A DNA stretch of 63,226 nucleotides, the filler included, from Pelomyxa schiedti (taxonomy: Eukaryota > Protista > Evosea), in assembly GCA_020536535.1 (NCBI GenBank). It is 13 parts of 13 records of this genome, joined end to end, with 100 filler letters (N's around TTAATTAATTAA, not from the genome) between each part and the next. Parts side by side here need not be neighbours in the genome. Positions count along the whole stretch, not along the records: positions 34,537 to 49,072 come from JAHLWZ010000100.1; 12 more parts are not named here. The stretch is one strand, 5' to 3'. Each line of letters opens with the position of its first letter. The stretch's first letter is position 1. This document shows, one piece after another, positions 4,019 to 47,740 of the stretch. Below the pieces are notes generated by a model. The model was not told the origin of the DNA. It did no database searches and saw only the letters and a program-made list of their open reading frames with translations. The translations under genes and the position numbers were made by a program.

Positions 4019-7000
4019 TCAGGGGGTTGAAGACATGTAGAATTCAAGTGTTGTAGTGCCTTCAATATCAGACTGGGAGAAGAAAGTGGGCTCCCAAGGT
4101 ACTCCATTGATAAACAGCTCACTAATGTACACCTATTTCTCGGCATTAGATCGTGAAATGTGTGATGTGTAAACTGAGGGGTAGTATCACATTGGAGGGA
4201 GAATTGTCATAGGCAATAATTGTGAGGTCACCAGATGGCCTATGCACAATAACTTTGTCAAATAGAGGTGATGTTACAAAGTAATTAGCAGTTCCAGCAA
4301 CTGGATAAAATCCCAAAGCTCCAAATAAATACCATGATGCCATGGCACCTGCAGTGTTTGTTTTACATTTAAACAAGAAATTCTGGCGTACCATAGTCCT
4401 CATTTCCGGGTATTCCACTTGGAGTTGTATCGTAGCGGTGATCTAGTATCCACCTGACATTCCTACATTTATTTCAAGTGTAACCAAAGCTAGCCTGAAA
4501 ACAGAGGGATGTACTTTTGAGTGAGGTCCGGTCTTCCGCCATAGTTAAACATGAATGGGCTTGCCAGGTTATGCTCATTCCCTGCCCAGTAATAACTATT
4601 TCTTGTGGAGGTGAAGGGATCTCTTTGTGATGTTTCCACAAATATTTGGAGTTGCTCGATAAATGATTCATTGGAACCAAACAAACCAATAAGGCCAGCA
4701 CCATCATAAGGAACATAGAACCTTGATGGGATGTGAGTGCAGAGTACTGGTGGACAGTAAAAGAAAACCTGTAATGCCAAGCGTCTCCTTCAACGTATCT
4801 GTTATCTCGGGTGTTTACCCACTCGTCAGGAAGTCTTGGGCACTTCCACTCACCTTTGCTAGTCTTGGGGCAGAAGAAGCTTTTTGGGGCATTTAGTGAG
4901 TCACTTCAAAAACCTTGTGCACCCTAACCTGTATTCAGAGTTCCAGATATTCATGTAATTTAATCCTCTTTGCGAGAAAACAGCTGCATCATCAAGCTCC
5001 CCTACAAATTAAATTAAAAAGGGTCAGGGAAAAAAAGGTGACCAATATCTTCAGCAAATTGTCCAAGCGCCCAGTCATCATATCTGAGTATACTTAGTTA
5101 AGTATGATTTTCATATGAATTACGAATAATCAAGAGTCAGGGTAGCCCCTCTTTCATCAACCTCATAGGGAATGTAGCCCAGTGATATCCAGTCATCGAC
5201 ATCTTGCGCATATTTACCCAAAAATACAACCGAAAATGTTTACCTATTCTTGTGTCATGTTCTTGTGTTTGAGTTGCAGCATATTTCATTGCTTCAAATG
5301 CCGCAGTAGTGTTGAAGTCAGTTATGCCTTTAAAAAAAACGTCTGTGATTTTTTGAAATCCAAAAGTAGAAACCTCTTTTCCAGGAATCTACTATTAAAA
5401 CAATTGCGTGATTTCCAACCACTAAAAGAGAATTAGAGCGTTTCTTTCCAACGTATTACCGACTTCCTTCAGTGTAGCAATAGGCGAACGGTAATTTTGG
5501 AAGACTTCCACCTACATGGAACATATTAAGACTTGTTCATACATTTAGATGGGCTGATACCTTGCTGAAACATAAGAATTAAAGATCGCACAGAATCTCG
5601 GGCAATAGTTGGCTCAAGGAATGCCATCAAAGAGCACTGCCTGTTTGTGGAGGATTAGGGATGAACAGGCACTGTATGTCACATACGCACGGAATGTATC
5701 CCAAATTGAGAGATCACTCAGGAAGCGATCTTGACCAGTTGGTAAAGTGTGCAATTGCTTGTCAAAACCAATATAGTCACCCCCTAAAAAATTTTGGCAA
5801 TGGTAATATTGTTTGGGCTATACCAACTTCAGAAAAAGTAGTTGGGGACATAAGTGCATGATAGACGGCAGTGTAAAACTGGATGTCGGTTAGTTTGGAA
5901 GGAAGAAACTTAAAGGTACTTTTATCAAGTCAGTTTCATTACCCCCTTCAACCTCGAACATGTCTAACTTGGCTTGCCAGATTTGCTATGGATTTTCAGA
6001 CACTTCATATTGAGGGATGAGATAACCTGAGTTGATGTGCGAATTTCATCAAATTTAGAATCTCCTATGTTGTTCTCCATGTTAATGCGAGCCTGTTCGA
6101 CACTAATTGAAGATATTCCAATATGAACCTAGAAAAGGAATCATTTAACTCTCTTGTCCGTTTGAAAAATAATTTAAACCTCCACTTGATAATCACTGGG
6201 TGAGAAGCCCACATATGCACCCCTATAATTCTATGAGGCGGCGGTAATTCTTGTTGTTAATTACGTGCTATTGAATTGTTCTGCTCCACAGCCAGTAGAT
6301 TTGGTTTCCAATGGTGTCACCTTCAAATATAAGTGGAGAGACTGGGAAGGGTATCGAATCTTACCGTAGAACCCTCCCAGACACCATAGGTAGTAAATTT
6401 CGCACTAAATGTAGCAATAAAGTAATTAGTATAACCGCCATCATTGCCAGTTAAGTCTCCGTTTTCCCATATCCACCCATAGACCTAAAGAGTGTTACAG
6501 ATTTAATTGGAGTCTCTGTCAACTTCATTATTTTCCACGTCAACTGTGGTACTTGTATCAAAGCACCCCTTCCGTGTCTTTATAGTATACCTAATGGACA
6601 CTGAGGGAAAATCTAGGAGACAAATTTCCTACGCTGTATCAAAAAGAATAACTCTCTCTGTGGTAGAAGCATCGCCATTGAATGTATATCTTTTTCAAAT
6701 TACAAACGGTAATAAAAATGTCAAATACCTGTGAACACCCACAAAATCTGTTGCCGTCAATTCAGCTCTTAAAGCAATTTGTAATTTTTCTTTAGTTCAA
6801 TGTTAAGTTACCTTATATTAGGGGTCTCAAGTGTCACGGCATAGTAACCGGGCTCAGCAGTCTCAGTTGAGTGGGAATAGTGGGACAGAAACCCATACAT
6901 GATAAAATCCTGAAAAGTCAAAATAAGGAGGGGCTACAAAATACTGGGACACACATCATGGGTTGGAATGTGATTTATTGGCATTACTCCTATAGTACCT

Positions 7001-7482
7001 AAGGTTTGTTTTTAGATACAGTCAAACGGCTCTTGTGGAATTACCATATTCAGTAGCACCAGCACCAACAATGTGGGTGTGGGAAAAAATTCTGATGTAG
7101 TTATCAGGCCAAAAATAGCCAGCTGTAGTTTTGAGAGGGAAAAAGGAGAGAAGCAAAAAGTGGCATCAATAAAATTCAATCAAAGAGAAAGAGTGGCACC
7201 ATTGTGATGTGCCACTGTGTTAACACAATCAAGGGTCTCGCAAGTATCAGGGCTCAATCTAACTAAGCCAAATGGAGTCTGTGGTCCTGGAGGTAATGCA
7301 ATAACACTGTTTTTTATAGGGCATTGTTAAGAAACAAAAAAAAGGGTTCTTGTGTTGTTAATCCATCAAAGAATAACGCACCCATCACTCCAGCCATAGG
7401 TCCCAATTATGGGATCCACGAAGTCGAGGGTACCTGCACCCACGACTGCACACCAACAGCAAAACAACAAGAAAGAAAACAT
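4019..7482 (-). CDS. Secreted glycoside hydrolase family 92 (alpha-1,2-mannosidase-like), intron-rich
   Basis: Signal peptide MFSFLLFCCWCAVVGAG, then FVDPIIGT and PGPQTPFGLVRLSPDT. Catalytic-region motifs YVEGDAWHY, YYWAGNEH and PGNEDYG|AMASWYLFGALGFYP. C-terminus YISELFINGVPW...LEFYMSSTP*. Confidence 0.92.
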
Positions 7483-7702
7483 CCCGAATTAATTTTTCGT
7501 TTAAATTGATTCACCCGTTCAACAGGCATCACTCAACCACGTCAATCACACGACCTGGGACCTGCACACTCTCGTGTTTATTATTTGGCTGAATAAAAAA
7601 ACTACGGAGAGTTTTCGGTTTTATACCGAGTTCCACAACGGATTTGATAACATCGAATTCAAAGAAAAACGGGTGATCGTAACAGCATCGTAACAACATC
7701 TG

Positions 7703-7802
7703 NNNNNNNNNNNNNNNNNNNNNNNNNNNNNNNNNNNNNNNNNNNNTTAATTAATTAANNNNNNNNNNNNNNNNNNNNNNNNNNNNNNNNNNNNNNNNNN
7801 NN
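7703..7802. other. Artificial contig linker (N-run + TTAATTAATTAA + N-run). The same linker occurs at 15525-15624, 18077-18176, 21731-21830, 27866-27965, 31474-31573, 34437-34536, 49073-49172, 51966-52065, 54282-54381, 60455-60554 and 61828-61927
   Basis: Identical 100-bp spacer with stops in all six frames; genes are cut at these points. Confidence 0.99.
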
Positions 7803-8073
7803 TTGCTCCAAGCCTCAATCAAACCAAAATTCGAATATTGAGTGAAAACAAAAAAACCAAACAAAATTCGCGATTGGCTAGAGAGGGTACCTGTGATGCC
7901 AAGCGCACATGATGGCAATTGCCTGCAGGTACGACGGCGATGCCGATTTGTCCCTCAGCGGCCTCCTTTGCTCAAAGTAACTCATTTTTTTTTTCTGCTT
8001 CGTAGAAAAGGCCTTTAACCCATTCATTCAACTCGAGTTGGTTTTTTTTGTTTTGTAAGATGATGATGAATCA

Positions 8074-9702
8074 TCAGAGTCTGTTGTCTATCAGTGTTGT
8101 TAATGGACAGGAAGAAATGGCCCTTGGGAGCAGGCCGTCAGAGGGGTGTTCGAGGACAAAGAGCAGGGTGCCTGTCATTGCGTCGATGAAGCGGTGTTGC
8201 ATGGCAACCTGTGGGAGCTTCCCATGTGTGTAGAGGGTGGTGTACGGCTGGCTAATCCTAGCTGAGGTGCTGAGCCTTCTCCTCTTGTTCGCTTTGCTTG
8301 GTTTGGGTGTGACTTCTCTCAGAAAGTGAGTGGAGGATACAATCAGGCCACACCCTGCCAGTACGTGGGCTGTTCCAGGAGGGTGGTTCACAACGAAACA
8401 TGGCTCAGAAATGCTGTTCTGATTGTGGATTTTTGGGAGGGAGAAAACTTGACTGGTTGAAAAGTCACTGGTTGTAACTATGAAGTGAGACTCGTCGCAG
8501 GCCTGAGCATTTGAAGTGGAGCTGAATGTAAACCATGGGATCGTATCTCCTGTGTTGAGGACAAGTAGCTCTTGTGTCGAGGCTGGAAGTGTCACTATCT
8601 TTGGAGGAATCGCCAAAAAGTAAACTCTTTCACTCCTATTAATGAGAGGCTTGGACAGAAAGGTGAGGTTATCAGGAAGCTGATGTGGGTATTTGAGATC
8701 CCGCATACAGACAAAGGATGGAGTAGAATCACCTCTAAGAACACCCTCCAAATCAAGGTGGAACACACACAATTTGAAATCCCCAGGAGTTTGGGCTCCC
8801 TCATTTTCAACTTCAGGTGTCCTTGATGCTATCACCTCCAGAACATTGCTATCTTGAGTATATTCAGTGTCTCCAAAGAACCTCACCATAAGTGGCTTGT
8901 GAGACCCCTGATTAACCCACTCTGATGTAGCCACCACCTTGCCTGTAATCTTTTTCAGCCCGGCAACAGACAAAGCATCATTTGGCAACAAAACAGCACC
9001 TCTACCTCCATTTGCACTTTCCTCTTCTGACTCTACATCAACAGCTGGGAGCCTCCAAACATCCAAGTACCAATCCCCACACGGGTCATACACATCAAGC
9101 ACCATCACCACCCACTTTGAGTTGGAGGCACAGAACAATGGCGGGAACACCTGATCCTCAATCAGCAGCGCCACATCACCACCCTTCCTTGCATCCCACA
9201 GAGTCACATTGGTGTGTGGATCACCAAGAAGCTCATCTGGAACCTCAGGCTCACAGTATTCACTCATCCTCACACACATTGAGTTTGTTACAGGGCCCAG
9301 AACGTGGAGATTAAGGGACACACTCACAGGCCGCTGTCCCACAATCCCAAGAGTGTGGGAGATCCTGACCAGAATTGTGTACTCGCACCAGGGGCCCCTG
9401 CAGCCCCTGGTCCTCGATCCCTCCCCGAAGTGGACGAGCACGCTCCGGTGCGGCTCAATGACCCAACGACGTCCAATTGCATCGACAATGATCCAAGTTG
9501 GGACATCGCCCAAAAAACACCTGGTACTACGTTTCGGGTGGCCCTCGTCGTTCGTCGCCGCCGGGGACGACTGATGGTCCCCGTTGATTACGGGACTATT
9601 ACGGCAACGTGGTACTATTGCAGCGCAAGCCAGAGAAAGAAGCTGGTCCGATGCCCTCAGTACATCGCTCAGTGAGCCTAAAGGCCCCCCCACGGCCATC
9701 AT
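8074..9702 (-). CDS. Intronless hypothetical protein, PRC-header family paralogue 1 (542 aa)
   Basis: Long ORF with AAAAATG start; colinear motifs shared with the two neighbouring ORFs (LLVLNTGDTIPWFT, HPPGT...AGCG, HRFIDAxTG). Confidence 0.85.
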   Translation of the reverse strand: MMAVGGPLGSLSDVLRASDQLLSLACAAIVPRCRNSPVINGDHQSSPAATNDEGHPKRSTRCFLGDVPTWIIVDAIGRRWVIEPHRSVLVHFGEGSRTRGCRGPWCEYTILVRISHTLGIVGQRPVSVSLNLHVLGPVTNSMCVRMSEYCEPEVPDELLGDPHTNVTLWDARKGGDVALLIEDQVFPPLFCASNSKWVVMVLDVYDPCGDWYLDVWRLPAVDVESEEESANGGRGAVLLPNDALSVAGLKKITGKVVATSEWVNQGSHKPLMVRFFGDTEYTQDSNVLEVIASRTPEVENEGAQTPGDFKLCVFHLDLEGVLRGDSTPSFVCMRDLKYPHQLPDNLTFLSKPLINRSERVYFLAIPPKIVTLPASTQELLVLNTGDTIPWFTFSSTSNAQACDESHFIVTTSDFSTSQVFSLPKIHNQNSISEPCFVVNHPPGTAHVLAGCGLIVSSTHFLREVTPKPSKANKRRRLSTSARISQPYTTLYTHGKLPQVAMQHRFIDAMTGTLLFVLEHPSDGLLPRAISSCPLTTLIDNRL

Positions 9703-37350: not shown

Positions 37351-37985
37351 TTGAACACAAACAGTTGCGGAGACAGCCAGGCCAGGCACCCCGTTCAGTA
37401 CCCTTATTGATGCAACCATCGAAATGGTGAGGACAAGGTCTCATGGAAACCAGAGACCTTGGTTATCTAAAAGTGTTCCGGGTCACTTTGCCCTGTTCTA
37501 AAGCCACTATCACTGCTGATCATACAGGAAGAAATTGACAATCACACTTTTCACAAACTGACTGCTCACCACAGCACGGTATCTATTATTATTTCAGGAG
37601 GACTGGGAGGTGGTGAGGGCGGCTGTGACGTGCTGCGTTGGCGGTCGCGATACGGGTTCGCCTTTGTTGCCGACGGGGTCGCCGGTAGTGGCTGCTTGCT
37701 GTGATGCTGAGGTTAGGTAGGNNNNNNNNNNNNNNNNNNNNNNNNNNNNNNNNNNNNNNNNNNNNNNNNNNNNNNNNNNNNNNNNNNNNNNNNNNNNNNN
37801 NNNNNNNNNNNNNNNNNNNNNGACTGGGAGGTGGTGAGGGCGGCTGTGACGTGCTGCGTTGGCGGTCGCGATACGGGTTCGCCTTTGTTGCCGACGGGGT
37901 CGCCGGTAGTGGCTGCTTGCTGTGATGCTGAGGTTAGGTAGGTGTGGGAATTGGGTGGAAAGACATACAACAAACTGCAGGCTGT

Positions 37986-39737
37986 TCACTCGCGAGACGT
38001 TGGACAGAGGTACTTGTGTGGAGGAGGGGTTGGCGGCAGTGGCTGTTGTGCTTGTGGGTGCAACGCAGGCCGTCGAGGTACCGGTAGTGGCGGCGGCCGC
38101 TGTGGCCCCGACGCCCGTTGCGGGACCGCCGACGTTGGCTCCTGTTTGTGTGGTGGTGTTGGCGGCCGTGGGGCCGTAAATTGCATTGGCTGGTCTTCGG
38201 GAAACCTACAAGAGCGAGTGAGATGAGTTTCGAGAGCAAGCCTACGTACATCAGTGGAAGAATCACCCAGAGGGCGCTCGACAGAGTTCTTCTTTGCGGC
38301 GAGATGTATCACAATCCAATCGTACATACAGTCATACCTAGGTTGAATTAGCATTATTGCAGGGAATTGGCCGTACGGCGCACGTTATTTTCTCTCTATC
38401 AGCAAGGGTTCTGAACAGCTTTCTCAAATATGCGTAATCAGGCTTCTCTGAAGGTTGTAAACCAAGGAAAGAAAGAGGAGGGACGAAACCGTCGAAATGA
38501 AGACCCCGGCAGTAGGCTAGAAAAGACGCTAGCTCAGGTGGGAAACCTTTACAGAGTTGCTCCACAGTAATGGAAAGTTTTTTTTCGGATATCTATGTTT
38601 GTAAGGGGAGTCATAAGGTGTTGTTCTAACTCTTTCATATTTCTGATGCTTATTATCTGCTTTCAGTCCTTGCCAGGGCAGTGATCCCCGACAAAAGTAT
38701 GCAAGGATAAAACCTACGGAAAGTTGATTTTCGGTTAATTCCTAAAGCTTTGCCGTACCAATGGACTCTAAATCATCTCGACGGCTTTGTTCAATCCCTA
38801 GGTGAGTATTTACACTAGCATATCGTGCTGTCCCTGTTAAACTCTGTAGCATGTTAGTTGTGGAGTTATGCACTTCATCAACCTTATTTTCTCTGTACGG
38901 AATGTGGACGTGAGTTTTTGAATCCCGGTACTTTTTAGCCAAACCAAAGTCTTTTGTTTGTTAGTTAGTTTTGTAAAATGTGTGACACCTCATACCAATC
39001 AAGTAAACGGCTCCCGATCTCGGACCAACACCCATTAAGAAATTATCTGGAATACAGCATTGTGAACGTCAAAGGAAAGTAGGCAAGTGGAACCTGGCTG
39101 CCAAGACATTAGACAAGACTGTTTATTGTAAGAAGATTTACCTTGAGATCTCGGTGAATAAAATTCTTAGAGTGCACGTATTCTAGTGTTCATTAGCGCA
39201 AGGAGTAGCAAACAGAAGCTTGGAGCTCAAAGAAGATGTATTACCTACACGATTGAGCATTTGCTCTCCCAGCATCAATATAGTTTTCAAGGTGAAGTGA
39301 TTTTTACAAAAATTGAAGAGGTCCTGCATGAGGTGAGTGCTACACAATGCAGGAGGAGAGGAACCTCGAGACTGGGGCCCAATAAGTCCATCACCATTAC
39401 GTTGAGATCATTCTCAACTCCAAACCAGTGTACCTGCGGGATTCCAAGACCTCCTTGAAGAATTTTATAGAGCTTGTACTCATAGTAAAGCTGCGGATGG
39501 AGTGTGCGTGTGTTTTCGACTTTAACCTTCATGGTATTAAAAACAATCGCCAAAAAAGAAGGGAAAAAAAAAATATACTCACGGCATACTGATCGCCTGT
39601 CATAACATTCTCTCCTAAGACCGAGTTAATGACGATAAGGGGAAACAAAAAAACACACCAAGGAAAATGTCTCCAAAAGATCCGCTCCCGATTTTCCTTG
39701 TGAGCTTGTACTTGTTGCTACACACACGCATCTCCAT
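37986..39737 (-). CDS. CK1: Casein kinase 1 with a Pro-rich C-terminal tail, multi-exon
   Basis: [25 protein letters not shown]; [17 protein letters not shown]; [12 protein letters not shown]; HIPYRENK|[27 protein letters not shown]; [11 protein letters not shown]. Confidence 0.97.
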
Positions 39738-40039
39738 TTTTGTGTTGCGGTTACGGTGTCGCGCCTACTATCGGTGTTTCGGTTACGGCACTAGAGCAAT
39801 TTGAGATTCTTTTTTCCCACTTTCTTGTGATGAAGGATTTCGCGAAAAACAAACCCTCAGAGATGAGACGTTCGTTCCCTGCGTGCCTTTTTTGCTTGTT
39901 GCACTCATTTGATCATTTTTTTTTCCAACCCCTGCAGCAACAGTGAGATCTTTGTTTGATCCGCACCCGTAGTATATGAGCTCATTTTTATTTGTAAAAC
40001 CAGGCGTCATCACTGCCTCTGCAGCTTGTTGTATTTTTT

Positions 40040-40400
40040 GATAAATGGTGGACTTTGCTTTTTGTCATTGCTTCTGTGGCGATAATGGCCTGGAAAGGTT
40101 GTCACATTCCTCTCTTTTTTTCCCTCATTTCGGGTCACGTAGGCATAAAGTACATTTACCCTGAGCACTATTTGGGGTGGGACATCTCTTTTTATTTTTT
40201 GTATGCAATAGTCGTGGCATTCAAGCTTTTTTTTGGTTTCTTCTCCTTCCTATTTCGAAAGTTCTTAACTCATTATTTTTCAGCCACAAAAGCAAACAAG
40301 TCATCACACATGCCATCGCTTGCTATTTTCTTTATTCTCTGGATAGTTGTGGTTGTGTGCAATCTATATTTTATCTTGTGGCAAGTTTATGTGTAAGCTC
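40040..40400 (+). CDS. Possible exons of a multi-pass membrane protein
   Basis: Hydrophobic open frame with several TM-like stretches; start and exon structure not resolved. Confidence 0.3.
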
Positions 40401-40875
40401 TCCCTCGGCTCCACATGTTGCCTAACATTAACAATGAATGTTAAGGGTTAGAGCAGATCAGATTCTGAACGCAATTTGCTTTGCTTTTGCCTTTGCTGAA
40501 CTTGTATTAGGAATTATCATTGCCTTCAGAATATGCACTCTAAGGATTTGATGGCAAAACGAAATGATATAAAAGGCAAGAGCAAATAAACAAATGCTAT
40601 TGACAAAAACAAAGCACTTATTCAGCTGCATTGTTTGGTTTGTGTTTGAGTGGTGCTGTTTGTTGGATCACTCTGAATGGGGAACAAAAGTTTTTCTGTG
40701 GATCATGGCTGAAAATTTGGTCCCACCCACTTCTTCAAGATTAGTGTCTTGTAAGGATACCCCACGAATTTCCAGTCAACAAATCCAAATGGCAATCAGC
40801 AGATCGACTTTGTATCCTTTGGATGACAGAGATCCTCGTGGGAATCTCCGCTGACACTGCCATTGTTGTTTCTGG

Positions 40876-42693
40876 GTGACTAGTAGAGGCTCTTGGTATT
40901 CCATGCACTGGCAGCTGCGATTCGTCGTCTGTTCTAAACAACTAAAGAATGCAATGAGGGAGCTTGAACAAACCATTGTGCGCGGAGGGGGGGGGGGAGA
41001 AGGAGGAGGGAGAGAGTACTCCTCGACTCTCCCGCCCTCATTACAAGGACACATGGTCAAGGCATGAAGTTGAATGCGATGAAGGCGGCGGCATCCTCTG
41101 CATTGAGTCGTAGGCAGTGTCAGACACAGAATGCATTTCATGTAACGGTGATGAGTCGGTACTTTCAGAGAACAACGAAATGGTGTCCCTTGACTGGGAA
41201 GAGTTGTCGGAGGTCTTCGAGTCCCCAACGGCGTCGGGGGGCGGCAGTAGATTATGGGACGCGGGATCGGCGGCGCGTGACATCGTTAGCCGGTTGGTGA
41301 CGGACAACAAGTTGTCGCAGGTAGTGTCGTCGCTCGAAGATGACGACGCACCCGCAGAGCAACTGCAAAACGAGGTTATTGTTACATGGCCAACCAACTT
41401 ACAACGAATTAACTGTAATACTTGCATGGACCTTACTGAACCCCAGGTGACAGAGGAGTTTGTTAAACATTATGGAGAGTGGGCTCGCGGTTGGTGTTGG
41501 ACAAAGGGTGAAGGTGGTGGTGCTGGCGTGGTCACAGCCTGGTGTTGCTATTCACATAGTTTTACGGGGAAGAACCCACGGGAGGCAATTGTTTCTGCTC
41601 TTGTAGAGTGGCGTGAATGGGTTAAAAAGCTGGGCACTATTTTTGACAAGATGAGGTAACCAACGAATTTTCAGGCCATCAATTTCATTCCATTGCCATA
41701 GAACCGATTTGGCTCCCTACAATTCGCAGCAAGCAACCGCGCGAGCAGCATCCCATCTTTTGCCACTTGTTTTGAGGTGGACTGGTGCCGATGACGCCTG
41801 GTACTCTACATTTGCTCAAATACTGGCTTGGTACTTGTCTTCTTTCATCCCCGAAAGTGAGGCAATGGAGCTTATGTTGAAAGAAATGAGTGGCAAGTTT
41901 GAAAGCTGGTGTGCTCCCAATGCCAAAACATCTACATCCGTATGCGAATCCATTGGTAAAGTCCTTGGGGACAAGATTGAACAACTGAAAGAAGAGGAAT
42001 CAGAAGAAGGTGAACCATTTCTCTTTCACTCCAAGACTAATTTTCCTCCAAGAATCTTCTGTGACAGAATCAACAGTCCGGCATGCTACTACAGTTGACT
42101 CCCTGGCTGCCTGGCTTGCAATAAGGAACAGCTTTGCCTGGGCCCCACCTAATAAACTATTCCTTCCATCCCGGCGTGATGGCCAGACGGAATACATTAC
42201 AACCCATGATACCAAACGTGATCCGGCTAGAGCTACAAATATGCTGGCCGCACTGGCACAAGAGCGGGATGCTTCAGCAAGGGGGCTTTCCCTCTCTTTT
42301 GAGCTCATTGGCACATGGCAGCAGACACTTCTCGGGAGCCCATCTGTTCCTAAGTTCAGGACCACTGATGCATTTGCCAAGTCAGGGGAAGAGAGGTACC
42401 CCTTCACATCCTCCACAGTGACAGAATTCCAATCTGCACTGCAACAGTCAGAGAGTGACATTGCCAGAGGTGCAGTTGTCTGTGCAGCCAGGGCCTACCT
42501 GGACGTGTGCTTCTTCCACCCATTTGAGGATGGCAATTCCAGGTGTGCTAGGCTTGTTCTGGACTTCATACTGAGGAAGAACGGGCTCACAGTGGACAAC
42601 ATGGAGCCGCTGATAGTACCGTGGTATGCTTCTGATCCCAATGTACCCCTTTCGTTCCTCCAAGCCCTCGTTTCTGTTTGTTTTAAGCTGTGA
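40876..42693 (+). CDS. Fic/Doc-family protein with a bacterial-type N-terminal domain, interrupted by spliceosomal introns
   Basis: AARAYLDVCFFHPFEDGNSRCAR; N-domain HYGEWARGWCWTKGEGGG..VTAWCCYSHS; GT-AG introns near 41056-41113, 41657-41702 and 42010-42052 restore one frame. The true start upstream of 41114 is uncertain. Confidence 0.85.
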
Positions 42694-42766: not shown

Positions 42767-43936
42767 ATGCAGCCGACACCCAAGCGGTACCGAACGAGCC
42801 AGCAGGCGAGACTGGACCCCCAACCCGAGCAACCTCGATCGCAACAACAGGAGCTCCCCCGCGTATCGCGTCGTGGCAAACGAACCAATAACGACTCGTT
42901 GGTGTCGTCTACGGTGAAAGGCGCTTCTGCGTACTTGGACAGGCTCGCTNNNNNNNNNNNNNNNNNNNNNNNNNNNNNNNNNNNNNNNNNNNNNNNNNNN
43001 NNNNNNNNNNNNNNNNNNNNNNNNNNNNNNNNNNNNNNNNNNNNNNNNNGCAACCTCGATCGCAACAACAGGAGCTCCCCCGCGTATCGCGTCGTGGCAA
43101 ACGAACCAATAACGACTCGTTGGTGTCGTCTACGGTGAAAGGCGCTTCTGCGTACTTGGACAGGCTCGCTGTTGACACCAAAAAGGTTGTTGGTGGTCGA
43201 CGGATCTGATTTTTGGAGATACAGCCCATCGGGGGACCTTTGCTTTTGTTTTTTGTTTTGACGCGGATGACTTACAGAGTGCGGACCAAGTAGCACGGGA
43301 GGTGACGGCCGAAATGAAGGTGCTGAGAACCGACATCGTGAAAATAGTGGACCAAAGGATTGCTCAACTGAAAGCGGAAGTTCGATCGAACTTGGTGGTG
43401 CGAATTGCTTTCAATTCTAACCATCGCCCCCCATTTTCCAACATCAATAGACATCTTTGGATCAACTCAGAGCCCTCAACTCGACAGAATACACAGTCAA
43501 GCAGAAGGTACGCACTTCAACTGTGTGGAGCACATTACCTCACTTGTAGTACAGTTCATTTTCCCAAGAGAACGTATGGTGAGTGTGCTAGAAAACTCAC
43601 TGAATGATATCTGCGTTTTTAGAGGTAGATACAACGAAACTCATTGAGTATTTACCACTGCAGTACGTTACTGCTGCTCGCGCGGTATGCCTCCAATTTT
43701 GGGCTGCTGTTCGAACTGGTGACCTGCGTGATCATTTTCCAAAATATCTAAATAATGTTTCAGTTTATTCTTGCCGCAACTGTGTACTTTCAACCGAGGC
43801 CCAAAGAGATATCTCCAGTGGCAAGACTACTTGGAAGCTTTTAGCTGACACCCTTGTTACACCCTGCATGAACTTCCAAGTCTCCATGCTCGAGGAGCAA
43901 AGATCCAAGACATTACATATACTTCTTTTTCTCTAG
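42767..43936 (+). CDS. Hypothetical protein with an F-box-like segment, multi-exon
   Basis: AAAAATG at 42767; coiled-coil-like exon; LIEYLPLQYVTAARAVCLQFWAAVR resembles an F-box. A 121-bp gap-flank duplication lies inside. Confidence 0.45.
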
Positions 43937-45153
43937 TGGTTTGATTTGTTGTTGGTGTGTTGTTGTGGCTGGGTGGTCGAGAAATAGGAAGGGCCTCCAG
44001 GGGGAACAGTGGACAGTGACAAGGATGCCCTGGCTGGAAGGCCCTGCAGGTCCCTGGTCACGATGATGGGGAGAGCCGTAGCTGCATCATACACCTTGGT
44101 CTTGCCCAGTGCCCACACAACAATGAAGCCATTTGGTGCCACGGCGAACTTGGAGCCCCTGTCCACGCGGAATCGCTTGTAGGGCTGACTGAGGCACCCA
44201 GTGTTGTACAAGCTGAACAGTAAGCCAGCATTTCCGGGCCGGGGCTCTACCTCCATGAAGCGGTGGTCATCTAGCTTTCTGATAGGCCATTGTGACACAA
44301 GGGGAACAGTAGAGTTGTAGCCGGTGCTCCAAAGAGAGTAGGACTTCTTGTCAGATGATTCGTCACAGATTTCTACCGGAACTAAGAGACCTCCTTCAGT
44401 ACCCATTATACCAGGGCGAGGCTTGTGGGCAATGAGCTGAGCAGGCTTCGATGACTTGCATAACTCCTTGGTGTTGCAAGAACTCTCCAGGTCGATTTGA
44501 ACCAGCATCCACTGCCCCTCATCCCTCTGGCACACAGTAACCTCGTCAGCGCCCGTGAATTCCAACCACTTGAAAGGCTCCCCATCCACCCTCACAGCGG
44601 CGCCATAGTCCGCGCCCTTCCAAACGAGAAGCTCGCCAGACTTGCCGCACCACAGCACGCGCCACCTGCCGTTGAGCGCGAACCCGCCAAACTGCGCGCC
44701 GCCGCGGCTGTGCAGGTGCTCCACCTTGCCGGACTTGAACCCCGTGGCCCTGACGACGCCAAAGGGCAGCGCGATCATGCAGGTCGCCCAGTCCATCCAC
44801 CCCAGTATCTCCTGCGAGTTCACGATCCACGTGTCCTTGCCCACGGTGCCCAGCGTCGCGCTCACGCCCACGATGACCGTCGCGCTCATCGGCTCCACGG
44901 CGGTGGGAGAGGAGGGGACCGAGGCCGGGCAGCTGGCGTAGTCGGCGCCGATCGCGACGCAGCGTGAGACGCGCAGGGCCCAGATCTTGCAGATCGAGTC
45001 GGCGACGACGTGGGGGACGGGGGAGAGGGAGCGGACGGGGCTGCGGCGGCCGCAGCGGGGGTGCAGGCCCGCCAAGATCGCCATGGCTTGGGCGCGGGGC
45101 TCGATGGTCCAGTAAGAGTCGTCGTGTTCTGGGGGCAATACGCTGAAGTCCAT
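43933..45153 (-). CDS. Intronless PRC-header family protein (about 406 aa)
   Basis: MDFSVLPP...RAQAMAILAGLHPRCGRRSPVRSL, VGVSATLGTVG, and a C-terminal VYDAATALPII like the other family members. Confidence 0.78.
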   Translation of the reverse strand: MDFSVLPPEHDDSYWTIEPRAQAMAILAGLHPRCGRRSPVRSLSPVPHVVADSICKIWALRVSRCVAIGADYASCPASVPSSPTAVEPMSATVIVGVSATLGTVGKDTWIVNSQEILGWMDWATCMIALPFGVVRATGFKSGKVEHLHSRGGAQFGGFALNGRWRVLWCGKSGELLVWKGADYGAAVRVDGEPFKWLEFTGADEVTVCQRDEGQWMLVQIDLESSCNTKELCKSSKPAQLIAHKPRPGIMGTEGGLLVPVEICDESSDKKSYSLWSTGYNSTVPLVSQWPIRKLDDHRFMEVEPRPGNAGLLFSLYNTGCLSQPYKRFRVDRGSKFAVAPNGFIVVWALGKTKVYDAATALPIIVTRDLQGLPARASLSLSTVPPGGPSYFSTTQPQQHTNNKSNH

Positions 45154-45480
45154 GTTGGTTGGTTTGTTTGTTTGGATGTATGTGCGTGTGTTGGTTGTGT
45201 CGTTTGTGGTTTGTTTGTTTTTTTTATGAATAAACGTATACGTATATAAGGTGTCATCGCTGACGAGACCTTGTACTTTTCGTTTTGTCAAATTTTTTGA
45301 TTTGACATTCATTCGCATAACAATCACTGAAAAGGGGAGATGAGGGGTCACAGGCACTGGAAGACCCCAAGCACAGACAGCAACACCCACCAAGAACAAC
45401 ATCAGTGGCGCTGTGATCACTCGGTGTCTTCAGGGCCATCATCATTTTGGAGTTGAGCAGAAAACCAAGGCCACACGACG

Positions 45481-47740
45481 ATGAGAGAAGGGCAACAGCA
45501 GGCACGGCGGGATACCTCGCCCGCCGTGGCCACGTCGTTGGGGAACAAACAACGGGAGGCAGGCAGGGTCCTCGTGGTCTCGCGGGTGGCGTGGGACTAC
45601 GCCGTGCAGCCGGTCCTCGCGGCCTCGTACAGGCCCCTCGAGCGCGACGACGTGGTGTGGGCGTTCGGGGCCGCGTCGGCCCTGTTCCCCCTCGTCGCCC
45701 TCGTGTGCCGCGGGGTGGCCGCCGCCCCCGTGGTGTTCAAGCACCTCGCCGACAGCGACCCGCAGGGGCACTCGCGCCACTGGGACGCGACGTGCGCCGC
45801 CCTCGCGGGGAGCACCGCGTGCATCGCCTGGATCCTGAGGCACAAGCCCGCCGCGACCAGGAACAACACGAGGGAGTGCCTCAGCGTGCTGCGGGGCCTC
45901 TGCGGAGGCGGCCACCTCGAGATGGCCAAGCAGCTCGTAGACGGCGGCGATGCGGCGACCGATCAGCGCGGGGCGCGCGGCCTCGGTTGCGATTATGGGA
46001 GCTGTGATGTGAGGTGGGTGAGGGAAGCGGGGCTGGTGTGGCCTGTGGGTGAGAGTGACCTGAGGGACGAGGTCAGGGCCATTGATCTCACTCCGGATGG
46101 GAATGAGGATGATTCCTTGTTGTCAGAGGTGTGCAGAGGGGGACACCTCGAGACAGCCAAGTGGGTTGTTGAGAGGTTCCGGCTGAGGGAGAGCTGGGAG
46201 CTTGCTGCTCCGTTCATGGCTGCTGTTCGTGCTGGGAAGCTCGAGGTGGCGAGGTGGTTGTGTGGATTATGTGGGGTTGTTTGGGCCGTGAACACTCTGG
46301 GGCTGGATTACCCAGTCGACTTCTACTGTGCCGGAAACTTGGAGATGGTTCAGTGGCTGGTGGAGGTCTTCCCAGGGAGCTGGAGGTTGGAAAAAGCTGC
46401 AAAGTGCCACTCCCCTGTGAAACTTGCTGTGGGTGTGATGCGAAACGAGATGATTACCCTGAAAGAACGCATTGAGGCCTTCCAGTGGCTGAAGTCACAC
46501 TTCGGCTTTGACCAACAAGCAGTCCAGAAGGTTGCCACAGGCACAGCAGAGGTGGAATCACTCATGTGGTTGAAAGAGACCCACGGCGTGCAGCTGACAC
46601 CGGCGAGCTTGTCGTGGTGGTGGACCGATGTGGAGGGTGTGGAATCCGTTGAGTGGTTCGTAAAGCACCTCCCAATGTCAGTCACAGCTGCCACTTTTGT
46701 TCAAGCTTGTGGAAACATCAAAGATGACTTGCACTGCGTGCGAGTGCTGTCACAGGGGGTCAATCTCACTCCAACCAACCACGAAGAAGCACTGATGGAA
46801 GCACTGTACTCTGGCAACATCAAAATCGCGAACTGGCTGGAAGCAACCTTCCATGTCATGGAGAAAAATGTCAATGCCACTGCCCCCAAGGCGAATTCCA
46901 CTCTCATTTTGCTGTGCAAGAAGTACAACAACTACTGCGACACAAGGGCCATCAGGTGGTTCTTCGAGCATGTATCTGCAGATAAAATAGATGAGAGTTC
47001 CCTGGCAAGAGCAGTGCGCCACACACGGTTCTCTGTCTTGTCATTCTTGCTTGAGTTGTTCCACTTTACACCCACTGCTGCTGATAAGCAGCAGGAGCAG
47101 CGCAAGTGGAGTGCAGTACTGCGGCAAGCTGTGACCACTGGTTGGACCCCAATTTCAAGTCAGATTATTTCTTGTGGGGCTGTTGACAGTAGTTATGCTG
47201 TAAATTGTGTAATTCAGTCTACGGGTTCGCATTTCATCTGCGGCAAAGCCATGAAAAAGCTTATACGCGAGTATCACCTGGAGGAGATGCCAGAACTCGT
47301 CAAGTACAACAACAATCTTCTTGCAGAATTGGTCCATGCCAATAAAACAAGGTGCGCAGAGTGGCTGATCCAAAACTTTCAAGTCACCCTGGAAGAGGTA
47401 TGTCCCTTTTGTACAAAGAAACACCCTAACTAAACCGAAAAAACAAAACCCACAGCTGCAGCACCATCCAAACTGCATCAATAGGGAGATTTCCTTTCCA
47501 ATGTGGAAGATGCTGCTGAAGGTTTTCCCACAGATAACAGGTGAATTTTTACTTAATTACCTGCGGTGCGCATTAATGTCATCACCCATCCACATTGAGT
47601 TTGCAATGAAGGCAGTTGGGATCACACAAGCCCAAGTGATGCACCTGGTGACTGATACAACATTACCGGTGCTGCCAAAGGAAACACAGTTGTGGATTCT
47701 GAAGCAAAAGATGTCGCGCCCTCATGACCACAAATGGTGA
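45481..47740 (+). CDS. Ankyrin-like repeat protein, two exons
   Basis: Repeated LC.GGHLE.A.W/L motifs (GGHLEMAKQLVD, CRGGHLETAKWVVERF, AGKLEVARWLC); intron from about 47398 to 47456; last exon ends at 47740. Confidence 0.8.

Follow-up and report, generated by a model that had tools for sequence, protein, structure and literature searches.

A bacterial-type two-domain Fic gene with four introns in the genome of the anaerobic amoeba Pelomyxa schiedti

How does a gene for a Fic protein of bacterial type come to lie in the genome of an anaerobic amoeba, and what might its product do there? To our knowledge eukaryotic Fic enzymes are rare outside animals. The question was raised by an initial annotation of a window of 63,226 nucleotides, the whole stretch of Pelomyxa schiedti DNA analysed here, in which positions 40876-42693 were read as a two-domain Fic enzyme related to bacterial proteins and interrupted by introns. 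The Fic gene of P. schiedti (Archamoebae) is found at positions 41064-42693 (+ strand) of the window, on scaffold JAHLWZ010000100.1 of assembly GCA_020536535.1, a record of 14,536 bp, equal in length to the piece of the window that comes from it, in which the gene has the coordinates 6528-8157. Of the limits first given, the end at 42693 (stop codon TGA) was right, while the start had been set some 190 nt too far upstream.

The gene is already in the databases under a generic name. GenBank carries its product (P0053, the top match of our profile search) as a "Fic family protein" of 469 amino acids. No paper was found that links Pelomyxa and Fic, or that treats the gene, its family or its bacterial origin, and the genome paper with its supplements does not mention the Fic gene (PMC8887013).

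Between 41064 and 42693 of the + strand long open stretches are present in three forward frames, whose translations contain all the peptide strings quoted in the initial annotation. When the segments 41064-41109, 41169-41374, 41447-41655, 41702-42009 and 42053-42693 are joined, P0053 is obtained with every residue identical, in a frame of 469 codons that is unbroken over the five exons. The four introns are of the GT-AG type and have lengths of 59, 72, 46 and 43 nt (phases 1, 0, 2 and 1). GT-AG introns had been correctly recognized from the start; their number, put at two, probably three, was too low, four being present in the GenBank model. The features of the gene and its downstream flank are as follows.

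41064-41109, + strand: exon 1, codons 1-15 and the first base of codon 16 (MKLNAMKAAASSALS); from the exon join equal to P0053
41110-41168, + strand: intron 1, 59 nt, GTAGGC...TTTCAG, phase 1; from the annotation only
41169-41374, + strand: exon 2, residues 16-84, holding M20 (ATG at 41180) and the conserved start of the N-domain, 'L(D/R)W..(L/V)'
41375-41446, + strand: intron 2, 72 nt, GTTATT...CCCCAG, phase 0, in frame and without a stop codon; from the annotation only
41447-41655, + strand: exon 3, residues 85-153 and part of codon 154, core of the N-domain; from tblastn with P0042 and P0052 and from the alignment
41656-41701, + strand: intron 3, 46 nt, GTAACC...CCATAG, phase 2; obligatory
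41702-42009, + strand: exon 4, residues 154-256, second half of the N-domain and start of the acidic linker; from tblastn with P0042, P0016 and P0043
42010-42052, + strand: intron 4, 43 nt, GTGAAC...TCCAAG, phase 1; obligatory; within the acidic linker insert specific to Pelomyxa
42053-42693, + strand: exon 5, residues 257-469 and the stop codon TGA, Fic domain including the flap region F358-Y372; from Pfam PF02661 and Foldseek
42517-42552, + strand: Fic active-site motif HPFEDGNSRCAR, residues 412-423; read from the sequence
42950-43049, no strand: scaffolding gap of 100 N, 257 nt downstream of the stop codon; assembly artefact

The splicing pattern is based on the GenBank model, which was made with Augustus and refined by PASA and EVM using single-cell RNA-seq (PMC8887013), and on the frame logic that follows from homology. 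Genes of P. schiedti contain 7.43 introns on average, and 98.4% of the introns are of the GT-AG type (PMC8887013). Introns 3 and 4 are obligatory because the bacterial homologues align over three frames, with shifts at these two GT-AG segments. Proteins of Myxococcota are collinear with the window over these frames; in tblastn the bacterial protein P0042 is collinear in residues 11-58 (frame 2), 68-140 (frame 0) and 136-320 (frame 1), its frame changes coinciding with introns 3 and 4. When retained, intron 3 leads at once to a TAA, and intron 4 to a stop after 29 codons, ahead of the Fic domain. If intron 1 were retained, translation would have to start at the ATG at 41180. Intron 2 is located where the family varies in length, and the alignment speaks neither for nor against it.

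By sequence a shorter intron 3 of 19 nt with its acceptor at 41674 is possible, and intron 4 is followed by two more in-phase AG acceptors, its exact acceptor being taken from the annotation. These alternative sites were set aside; the annotated ones reproduce the GenBank protein.

P0053 is collinear with a family of bacterial proteins of 400-460 amino acids from about residue 20 to the C-terminus (35-42% identity). Aligned over the full length with 17 bacterial proteins it is 33-40% identical, and each of the two domains contains invariant residues. In this alignment the bacterial start codons coincide with the internal M20 encoded at 41180 rather than with the annotated ATG at 41064, and exon 1 is part of a 19-residue N-terminal extension that is missing from the bacterial homologues. 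A phmmer comparison with the family gave E values of 3e-73 to 1e-50 in single stretches over residues ~50-460. The Fic exon alone is 38-47% identical to bacterial Fic proteins, its matches being single-domain 'Fic family proteins' of about 210 amino acids from Streptomyces, Kitasatospora, Nocardiopsis and Actinomadura, and longer proteins from Myxococcota. The full-length family is mostly from Streptomycetaceae, with further members from Actinomadura, Lentzea, Polyangiaceae, Sandaracinaceae and other Myxococcota. The bacterial-type two-domain Fic architecture, which the initial annotation had put forward, was thereby confirmed: both domains are homologous to proteins of Actinomycetota and Myxococcota.

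The family is large. When each bacterial species was represented by a single genome, over 500 loci for a relative were counted, and the 80 best among them belong to Actinomycetota, Myxococcota (including Nannocystis and Minicystis rosea), two metagenome-assembled genomes (MAGs) of Planctomycetota and one MAG labelled 'Rickettsiales'. The last has a GC content of 67%, which is at odds with its label. An exhaustive HMMER search of 1.84 billion cluster representatives returned 567 matches at E <= 1e-3, the best non-self match being 42% identical. In none of the searches was a second eukaryote named among the matches, names being attached to the best 120 matches only of the full-length family profile search. 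The initial annotation would have been contradicted by widespread proteins of eukaryotes as the closest homologues; these searches yielded no eukaryotic homologue.

Closest to the Pelomyxa protein in architecture are the bacterial two-domain proteins, such as those from Streptomyces venezuelae (SVEN_4042, P0114), Polyangiaceae (P0067), Sandaracinaceae (P0170), Minicystis rosea and Nannocystis, which are built alike over their whole length. In common are the N-domain motifs GxWxxGWxW...WCC..(H/D)S, TGAxDAWY and GxFxSW, the linker, and a Fic domain with AARAYLDVCFFHPFxDGN, at 33-42% identity over residues ~79-460. The Pelomyxa copy differs from them in its four introns, a GC content of 51%, the 19-residue extension, an acidic linker insert of ~18 residues and a Ser in place of Ala at motif position 8.

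Is the gene really part of the amoeba genome? Whole-genome-amplified single cells from a polyxenic culture are a setting where chimeras can occur. The P. schiedti genome was sequenced from MDA-amplified single cells of a polyxenic culture, and the amoeba has prokaryotic endosymbionts (PMC8887013); moreover, there is a joined gap in the scaffold. It had therefore to be considered that the gene might be a bacterial contaminant or the product of a chimeric join in the assembly. The neighbours of the Fic gene on its contig are a CK1-type Pkinase gene (37594-39737, - strand) and a Transmemb_17 (TMEM17) gene (39863-40551), both of which contain introns, since the gene ranges exceed the coding lengths. 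All three genes are to the left of the gap, which does not part them. The gap is flanked on the left by 121 nt (42829-42949) of which an exact copy follows on its right (43050-43170). The assembly was made with SPAdes, with a largest k-mer of 121, and then with P_RNA_scaffolder (PMC8887013). Since the 121-nt duplicate fits the largest SPAdes k-mer followed by RNA-seq scaffolding, the gap is an assembly join with a clean k-mer overlap.

The base composition agrees with residence in the amoeba. The coding sequence has 51% GC (GC3 52%), like the whole piece (51%), and the introns have 39-46%, as against about 70% in the bacterial loci. The nearest relatives are on contigs with bacterial gene content, with a GC content of about 70% wherever the DNA was readable. 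In addition, the GT-AG segments that change the frame interrupt the coding sequence, so that a bacterium could not express the gene, and in the exhaustive HMMER search no bacterial sequence was more than 42% identical. With intron-bearing eukaryotic neighbours, host-like GC and a gap that lies beyond all three genes, contamination or chimerism is very unlikely. That the gene resides in the eukaryotic genome, which the initial annotation had concluded from the introns, is thus upheld by the introns, the linkage to eukaryotic genes and the host-like GC.

A maximum-likelihood tree was calculated from 55 sequences with the model LG+C20+F+G4; it is unrooted. The Actinomycetota form one tight clade (100/100) with a long stem, nested in poorly resolved sequences from Myxococcota, Planctomycetota and metagenomes. 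Pelomyxa is placed outside the Actinomycetota clade, among Myxococcota-type sequences, on a long branch (1.85 substitutions per site) with weak support (90/43), and its composition deviates from that of the rest of the alignment. In the AU test a forced grouping of Pelomyxa with Actinomycetota was not rejected (p = 0.31). Naming a donor was given up in view of the long branch, the 90/43 support and this p value. The last Arg of the Fic motif, which Pelomyxa shares with the Myxococcota-type members and which in the Actinomycetota clade is Phe or Leu, is one motif feature in favour of a Myxococcota-like source.

Could the gene instead be an ancient eukaryotic one, inherited vertically and lost nearly everywhere else, or could it have passed from a eukaryote to bacteria? 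The absence of a root, the long and weakly placed Pelomyxa branch and the thin sampling of protists in the databases leave room for such a history. It would have to account for a family that is carried by a single eukaryote but, among bacteria, by hundreds of species from three phyla or more, with no other eukaryote among the best 120 named matches and nothing above 42% identity from any source. It would also have to account for the alignment of the bacterial start with the internal M20 and for the extension, the linker and the introns, which are derived features specific to the eukaryote. We consider it extremely unlikely. Because hundreds of bacterial species face one eukaryote, and because the eukaryote-specific additions are derived, the direction of transfer was in all likelihood from bacteria to the amoeba. 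There is good support for a lateral transfer from bacteria and a subsequent gain of introns. Such transfers into anaerobic protists with later intron gain are in general well documented, and the Pelomyxa gene is a clear but not unusual case of gene uptake from bacteria.

What does the gene encode? The Fic/DOC family PF02661 of Pfam is matched with 28.1 bits by the last open reading frame and with 27.0 bits by the whole protein, the cut-off being 24. The motif HPFEDGNSRCAR keeps the His, the Phe, the Asp, the Gly-Asn and both Arg of HxFx(D/E)GN(G/K)RxxR, so that the earlier statement that the His, the acidic residue, the GN and both Arg are retained can be read directly from the sequence. Conservation among 190 full-length family members is 100% at the H, F, D, G, N and first R of this motif. 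At position 8, where Gly is canonical, Pelomyxa has Ser and 91% of the family have Ala.

In NCBIfam only sub-threshold matches at the level of the motif were obtained (Fic subfamilies XopAC, NmFic and Doc). The type III effector XopAC/AvrAC (NF041381) was rejected, since the match, confined to the Fic motif region, scored 22.5 bits where the cut-off is 450, and a Doc or AvrAC-type identity is ruled out by these sub-threshold scores. Membership in an anti-phage defence system was likewise dismissed, the PADLOC matches being weak and restricted to the core (SoFic, 31.7 bits).

A full-length AF2 model had a mean pLDDT of 83 and a pTM of 0.55, and because of the latter the orientation of the two domains is uncertain. 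By this model and Foldseek the protein is a Fic protein: all 13 PDB matches of the full-length model at E <= 1e-3 are Fic proteins (probability 1.00), among them FICD, C. elegans FIC-1, IbpA Fic2, BT_2513 and SoFic. The best PDB sequence-profile match is FICD/FIC-1, in the Fic core only.

Animal FICD/HYPE, the class II AMPylase and de-AMPylase of BiP, is the best match both in Foldseek (E 8e-5) and in the PDB sequence-profile search (E 1e-6), and has the Fic core fold and motif in common with the Pelomyxa protein. The two are only 15-17% identical, and the latter lacks a TM anchor, TPR repeats and an inhibitory helix of the TVAIEN type. Its N-terminal domain is unrelated to that of FICD and of bacterial descent. 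In agreement with the initial annotation, which had found the TM/TPR layout of FICD/HYPE to be lacking, Pfam gave no TPR match, and the N-domain is homologous to that of the bacterial family. With the solved bacterial Fic AMPylases (IbpA Fic2, SoFic SO_4266, BT_2513, VopS and the Bep proteins) the protein shares the helical core, the beta-hairpin flap and the HxFx(D/E)GNxRxxR loop. This likeness is confined to the core, and a class I, II or III inhibitory motif is missing from the Pelomyxa protein.

Auto-inhibited Fic proteins are, in the scheme of Engel and colleagues from 2012, reportedly divided into classes I-III by the motif (S/T)xxxE(G/N), present in cis or on a partner protein. This motif is absent from P0053 and occurs in at most 3 of the 190 family members in any alignment column. 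A conserved partner gene (antitoxin or immunity) was not found around 81 bacterial loci, the largest cluster of neighbours comprising 6 loci, all from Actinomycetota. Nothing recurrent emerged from Pfam scans of the open reading frames adjoining the gene in nine non-actinobacterial loci, and the 81 loci gave no secretion, effector or toxin-antitoxin context. Judged by its sequences, the family is not among the auto-inhibited classes I-III, having neither an inhibitory helix nor a conserved partner. An SMI1_KNR4/SUKH gene beside P0058 is an isolated case, and a toxin-immunity reading was therefore rejected. As to other domain fusions, Pfam finds Fic alone in ten longer or shorter relatives.

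The N-domain (residues 20-262), when modelled alone, is an all-helical domain of ~240 residues (pLDDT 92, pTM 0.88). Thirteen of its residues (G94, W96, G99, W100, W102, T181, W187, W197, G218, F220, S222, W223 and P226) are at least 90% conserved among the 190 members and are all present in P0053. Family-conserved in the same set are also G111, C117, C118 and S122, so that exon 3 contributes G94, W96, G99, W100, W102, G111, C117, C118 and S122, and exon 4 T181, W187, W197, G218, F220, S222, W223 and P226. A structural relative of the N-domain was not found in the PDB by Foldseek (best E 0.9). The wide search with VIA-align gave at best a generic helical bundle (Z 7.5 over 95 residues). Neither the N-domain nor the two open stretches upstream of the last one matched a family of Pfam or NCBIfam, and on the whole protein Pfam found nothing besides Fic.

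We therefore propose, with considerable confidence, that the gene is a nuclear Pelomyxa gene which arose from a bacterial two-domain gene by lateral acquisition and later modification, and whose product is most likely a cytosolic Fic-type nucleotidyl transferase (AMPylase), as its sequence suggests. The complete two-domain gene, encoding the helical N-domain of ~240 residues and the Fic domain of ~200 residues, would have been taken from a bacterium. After the transfer its base composition would have shifted to that of the host, four short spliceosomal introns would have been gained, and the 19-residue N-terminal extension on its own exon and the acidic linker insert would have been added; the gene is probably expressed. 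In the predicted reaction His412 would deprotonate the hydroxyl group of a Ser, Thr or Tyr in the target, which the beta-hairpin flap (about 358-372) would present, and Asp416, Asn418, Arg420 and Arg423 would hold Mg-ATP. These roles of the five residues are what we take to be established Fic enzymology. Since the family is without the inhibitory-glutamate helix, the N-domain may serve to recognize targets or to regulate the enzyme.

The reactions catalysed by Fic folds also include phosphocholination, UMPylation, phosphorylation and de-AMPylation. The acquired gene could thus be real and yet not encode an AMPylase: its product might transfer phosphocholine or a different nucleotide, serve chiefly for de-AMPylation or be a catalytically idle scaffold, or the gene might be unexpressed and decaying. 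The motif does depart from the canonical form, with Ala or Ser for Gly at position 8 and without the last Arg in the Actinomycetota clade; the lack of an inhibitory helix is unusual in an ATP-using Fic enzyme, the Pfam score is barely above the threshold and the Pelomyxa branch is long. These readings agree poorly with a frame of 469 codons that is intact over five exons, with the retention of every 100%-conserved family residue plus Arg423, and with AMPylases (FICD, IbpA Fic2 and SoFic) as the best structural matches. In Fic enzymes that AMPylate, the gamma-phosphate of ATP is bound by the equivalent of Arg423. A product other than an AMPylase, or a gene in decay, is accordingly a possibility that we regard as somewhat unlikely.

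No signal-peptide-like hydrophobic stretch was found at the N-terminus (MKLNAMKAAASSALSQNNE), and the bacterial relatives show neither a secretion nor an effector context; the deployment against prey or symbionts put forward in the initial annotation thus finds no support. The N-terminus, being rich in Ala, Ser and Lys, could, by way of speculation, suit an organelle leader. One may go further and imagine that the N-domain is an undescribed fold replacing the inhibitory helix, and that the Pelomyxa copy has been re-targeted by its leader to the mitochondrion-related organelle or to an endosymbiont compartment, where, as an AMPylation switch domesticated from bacteria, it would act on proteins of the organelle or the symbionts. 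This we consider quite improbable, and a cytosolic AMPylase of bacterial descent remains the reading that we prefer.

The gene points to a large uncharacterised bacterial Fic family, present in hundreds of species, chiefly Streptomycetaceae and Myxococcota. Its N-domain is without a Pfam model or a structural relative and the usual auto-inhibition motif is missing, so that biochemical study of the family seems reasonable; these two features, an N-domain not described before and the lack of auto-inhibition, are those most worth pursuing. For Pelomyxa the gene provides a clean and well-anchored case of what appears to be a complete bacterial two-domain Fic gene in a protist nucleus, to which four introns and a leader were added later. 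It adds to the load of laterally acquired genes in Archamoebae and contributes intron gains that are dated by their context.

Two additions distinguish the Fic protein of Pelomyxa schiedti (P0053) from all bacterial homologues compared, namely an N-terminal extension and an acidic insert in the linker, the latter containing intron 4. They are listed here with the two genes that neighbour the Fic gene.

41064-41179, + strand: N-terminal extension of 19 amino acids, rich in Ala, Ser and Lys and partly on its own exon; Pelomyxa only
41980-42075, + strand: acidic linker insert EQLKEEESEEESSVTES, with intron 4 inside; Pelomyxa only
39863-40551, + strand: gene for a Transmemb_17 protein (ciliary transition-zone TMEM17-type)
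37594-39737, - strand: gene for a casein-kinase-I-like kinase

The TMEM17-type and casein-kinase-I-like neighbours are an ordinary eukaryotic context. The composition of the scaffold is very uneven, its GC content spanning 38% to 72%, and parts of the downstream genes (a 403-amino-acid gene and an ankyrin-repeat gene; 44537-46036) reach 68-72%. Downstream of the Fic gene the 121 nucleotides to the left of a 100-N gap (42829-42949) are identical to those to its right (43050-43170). This duplicate is a k=121 contig overlap that was not removed by the scaffolder, and the true sequence is therefore single copy and gap-free here.

The closest bacterial relative of the Pelomyxa protein (42% identity) is P0058, encoded on contig ENA ERZ1761213, where a gene of the SMI1_KNR4/SUKH family adjoins the P0058 gene, its stop overlapping the P0058 start. 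Proteins of the SUKH family frequently serve in immunity. The pairing of a SUKH gene with a Fic gene is not kept in the other bacterial loci examined. Another family member (locus L024, CAZXHG010000096.1) lies in a metagenome-assembled genome labelled 'uncultured Rickettsiales'. The contig GC content of 67% is ill-suited to Rickettsiales, and the genome is probably mis-binned or mislabelled. On complete Streptomyces chromosomes (loci L016, L036, L055 and L064) the family member tends to sit close to one end, in the variable arms; examples are position 10.1 Mb on a chromosome of 11.7 Mb, 9.13 Mb on one of 9.25 Mb and 10.5 Mb on one of 11.1 Mb.

The last Arg of the Fic motif is kept in Pelomyxa and in the Myxococcota-type members and is replaced by Phe or Leu in the Actinomycetota clade of the family (e.g. 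P0065, P0087 and P0114, the last from Streptomyces venezuelae); in the alignment of 190 family members, 53 have the replaced form HPFDDGNARSAF. This replacement suggests that the handling of the nucleotide is changed in the Streptomyces proteins of the family.
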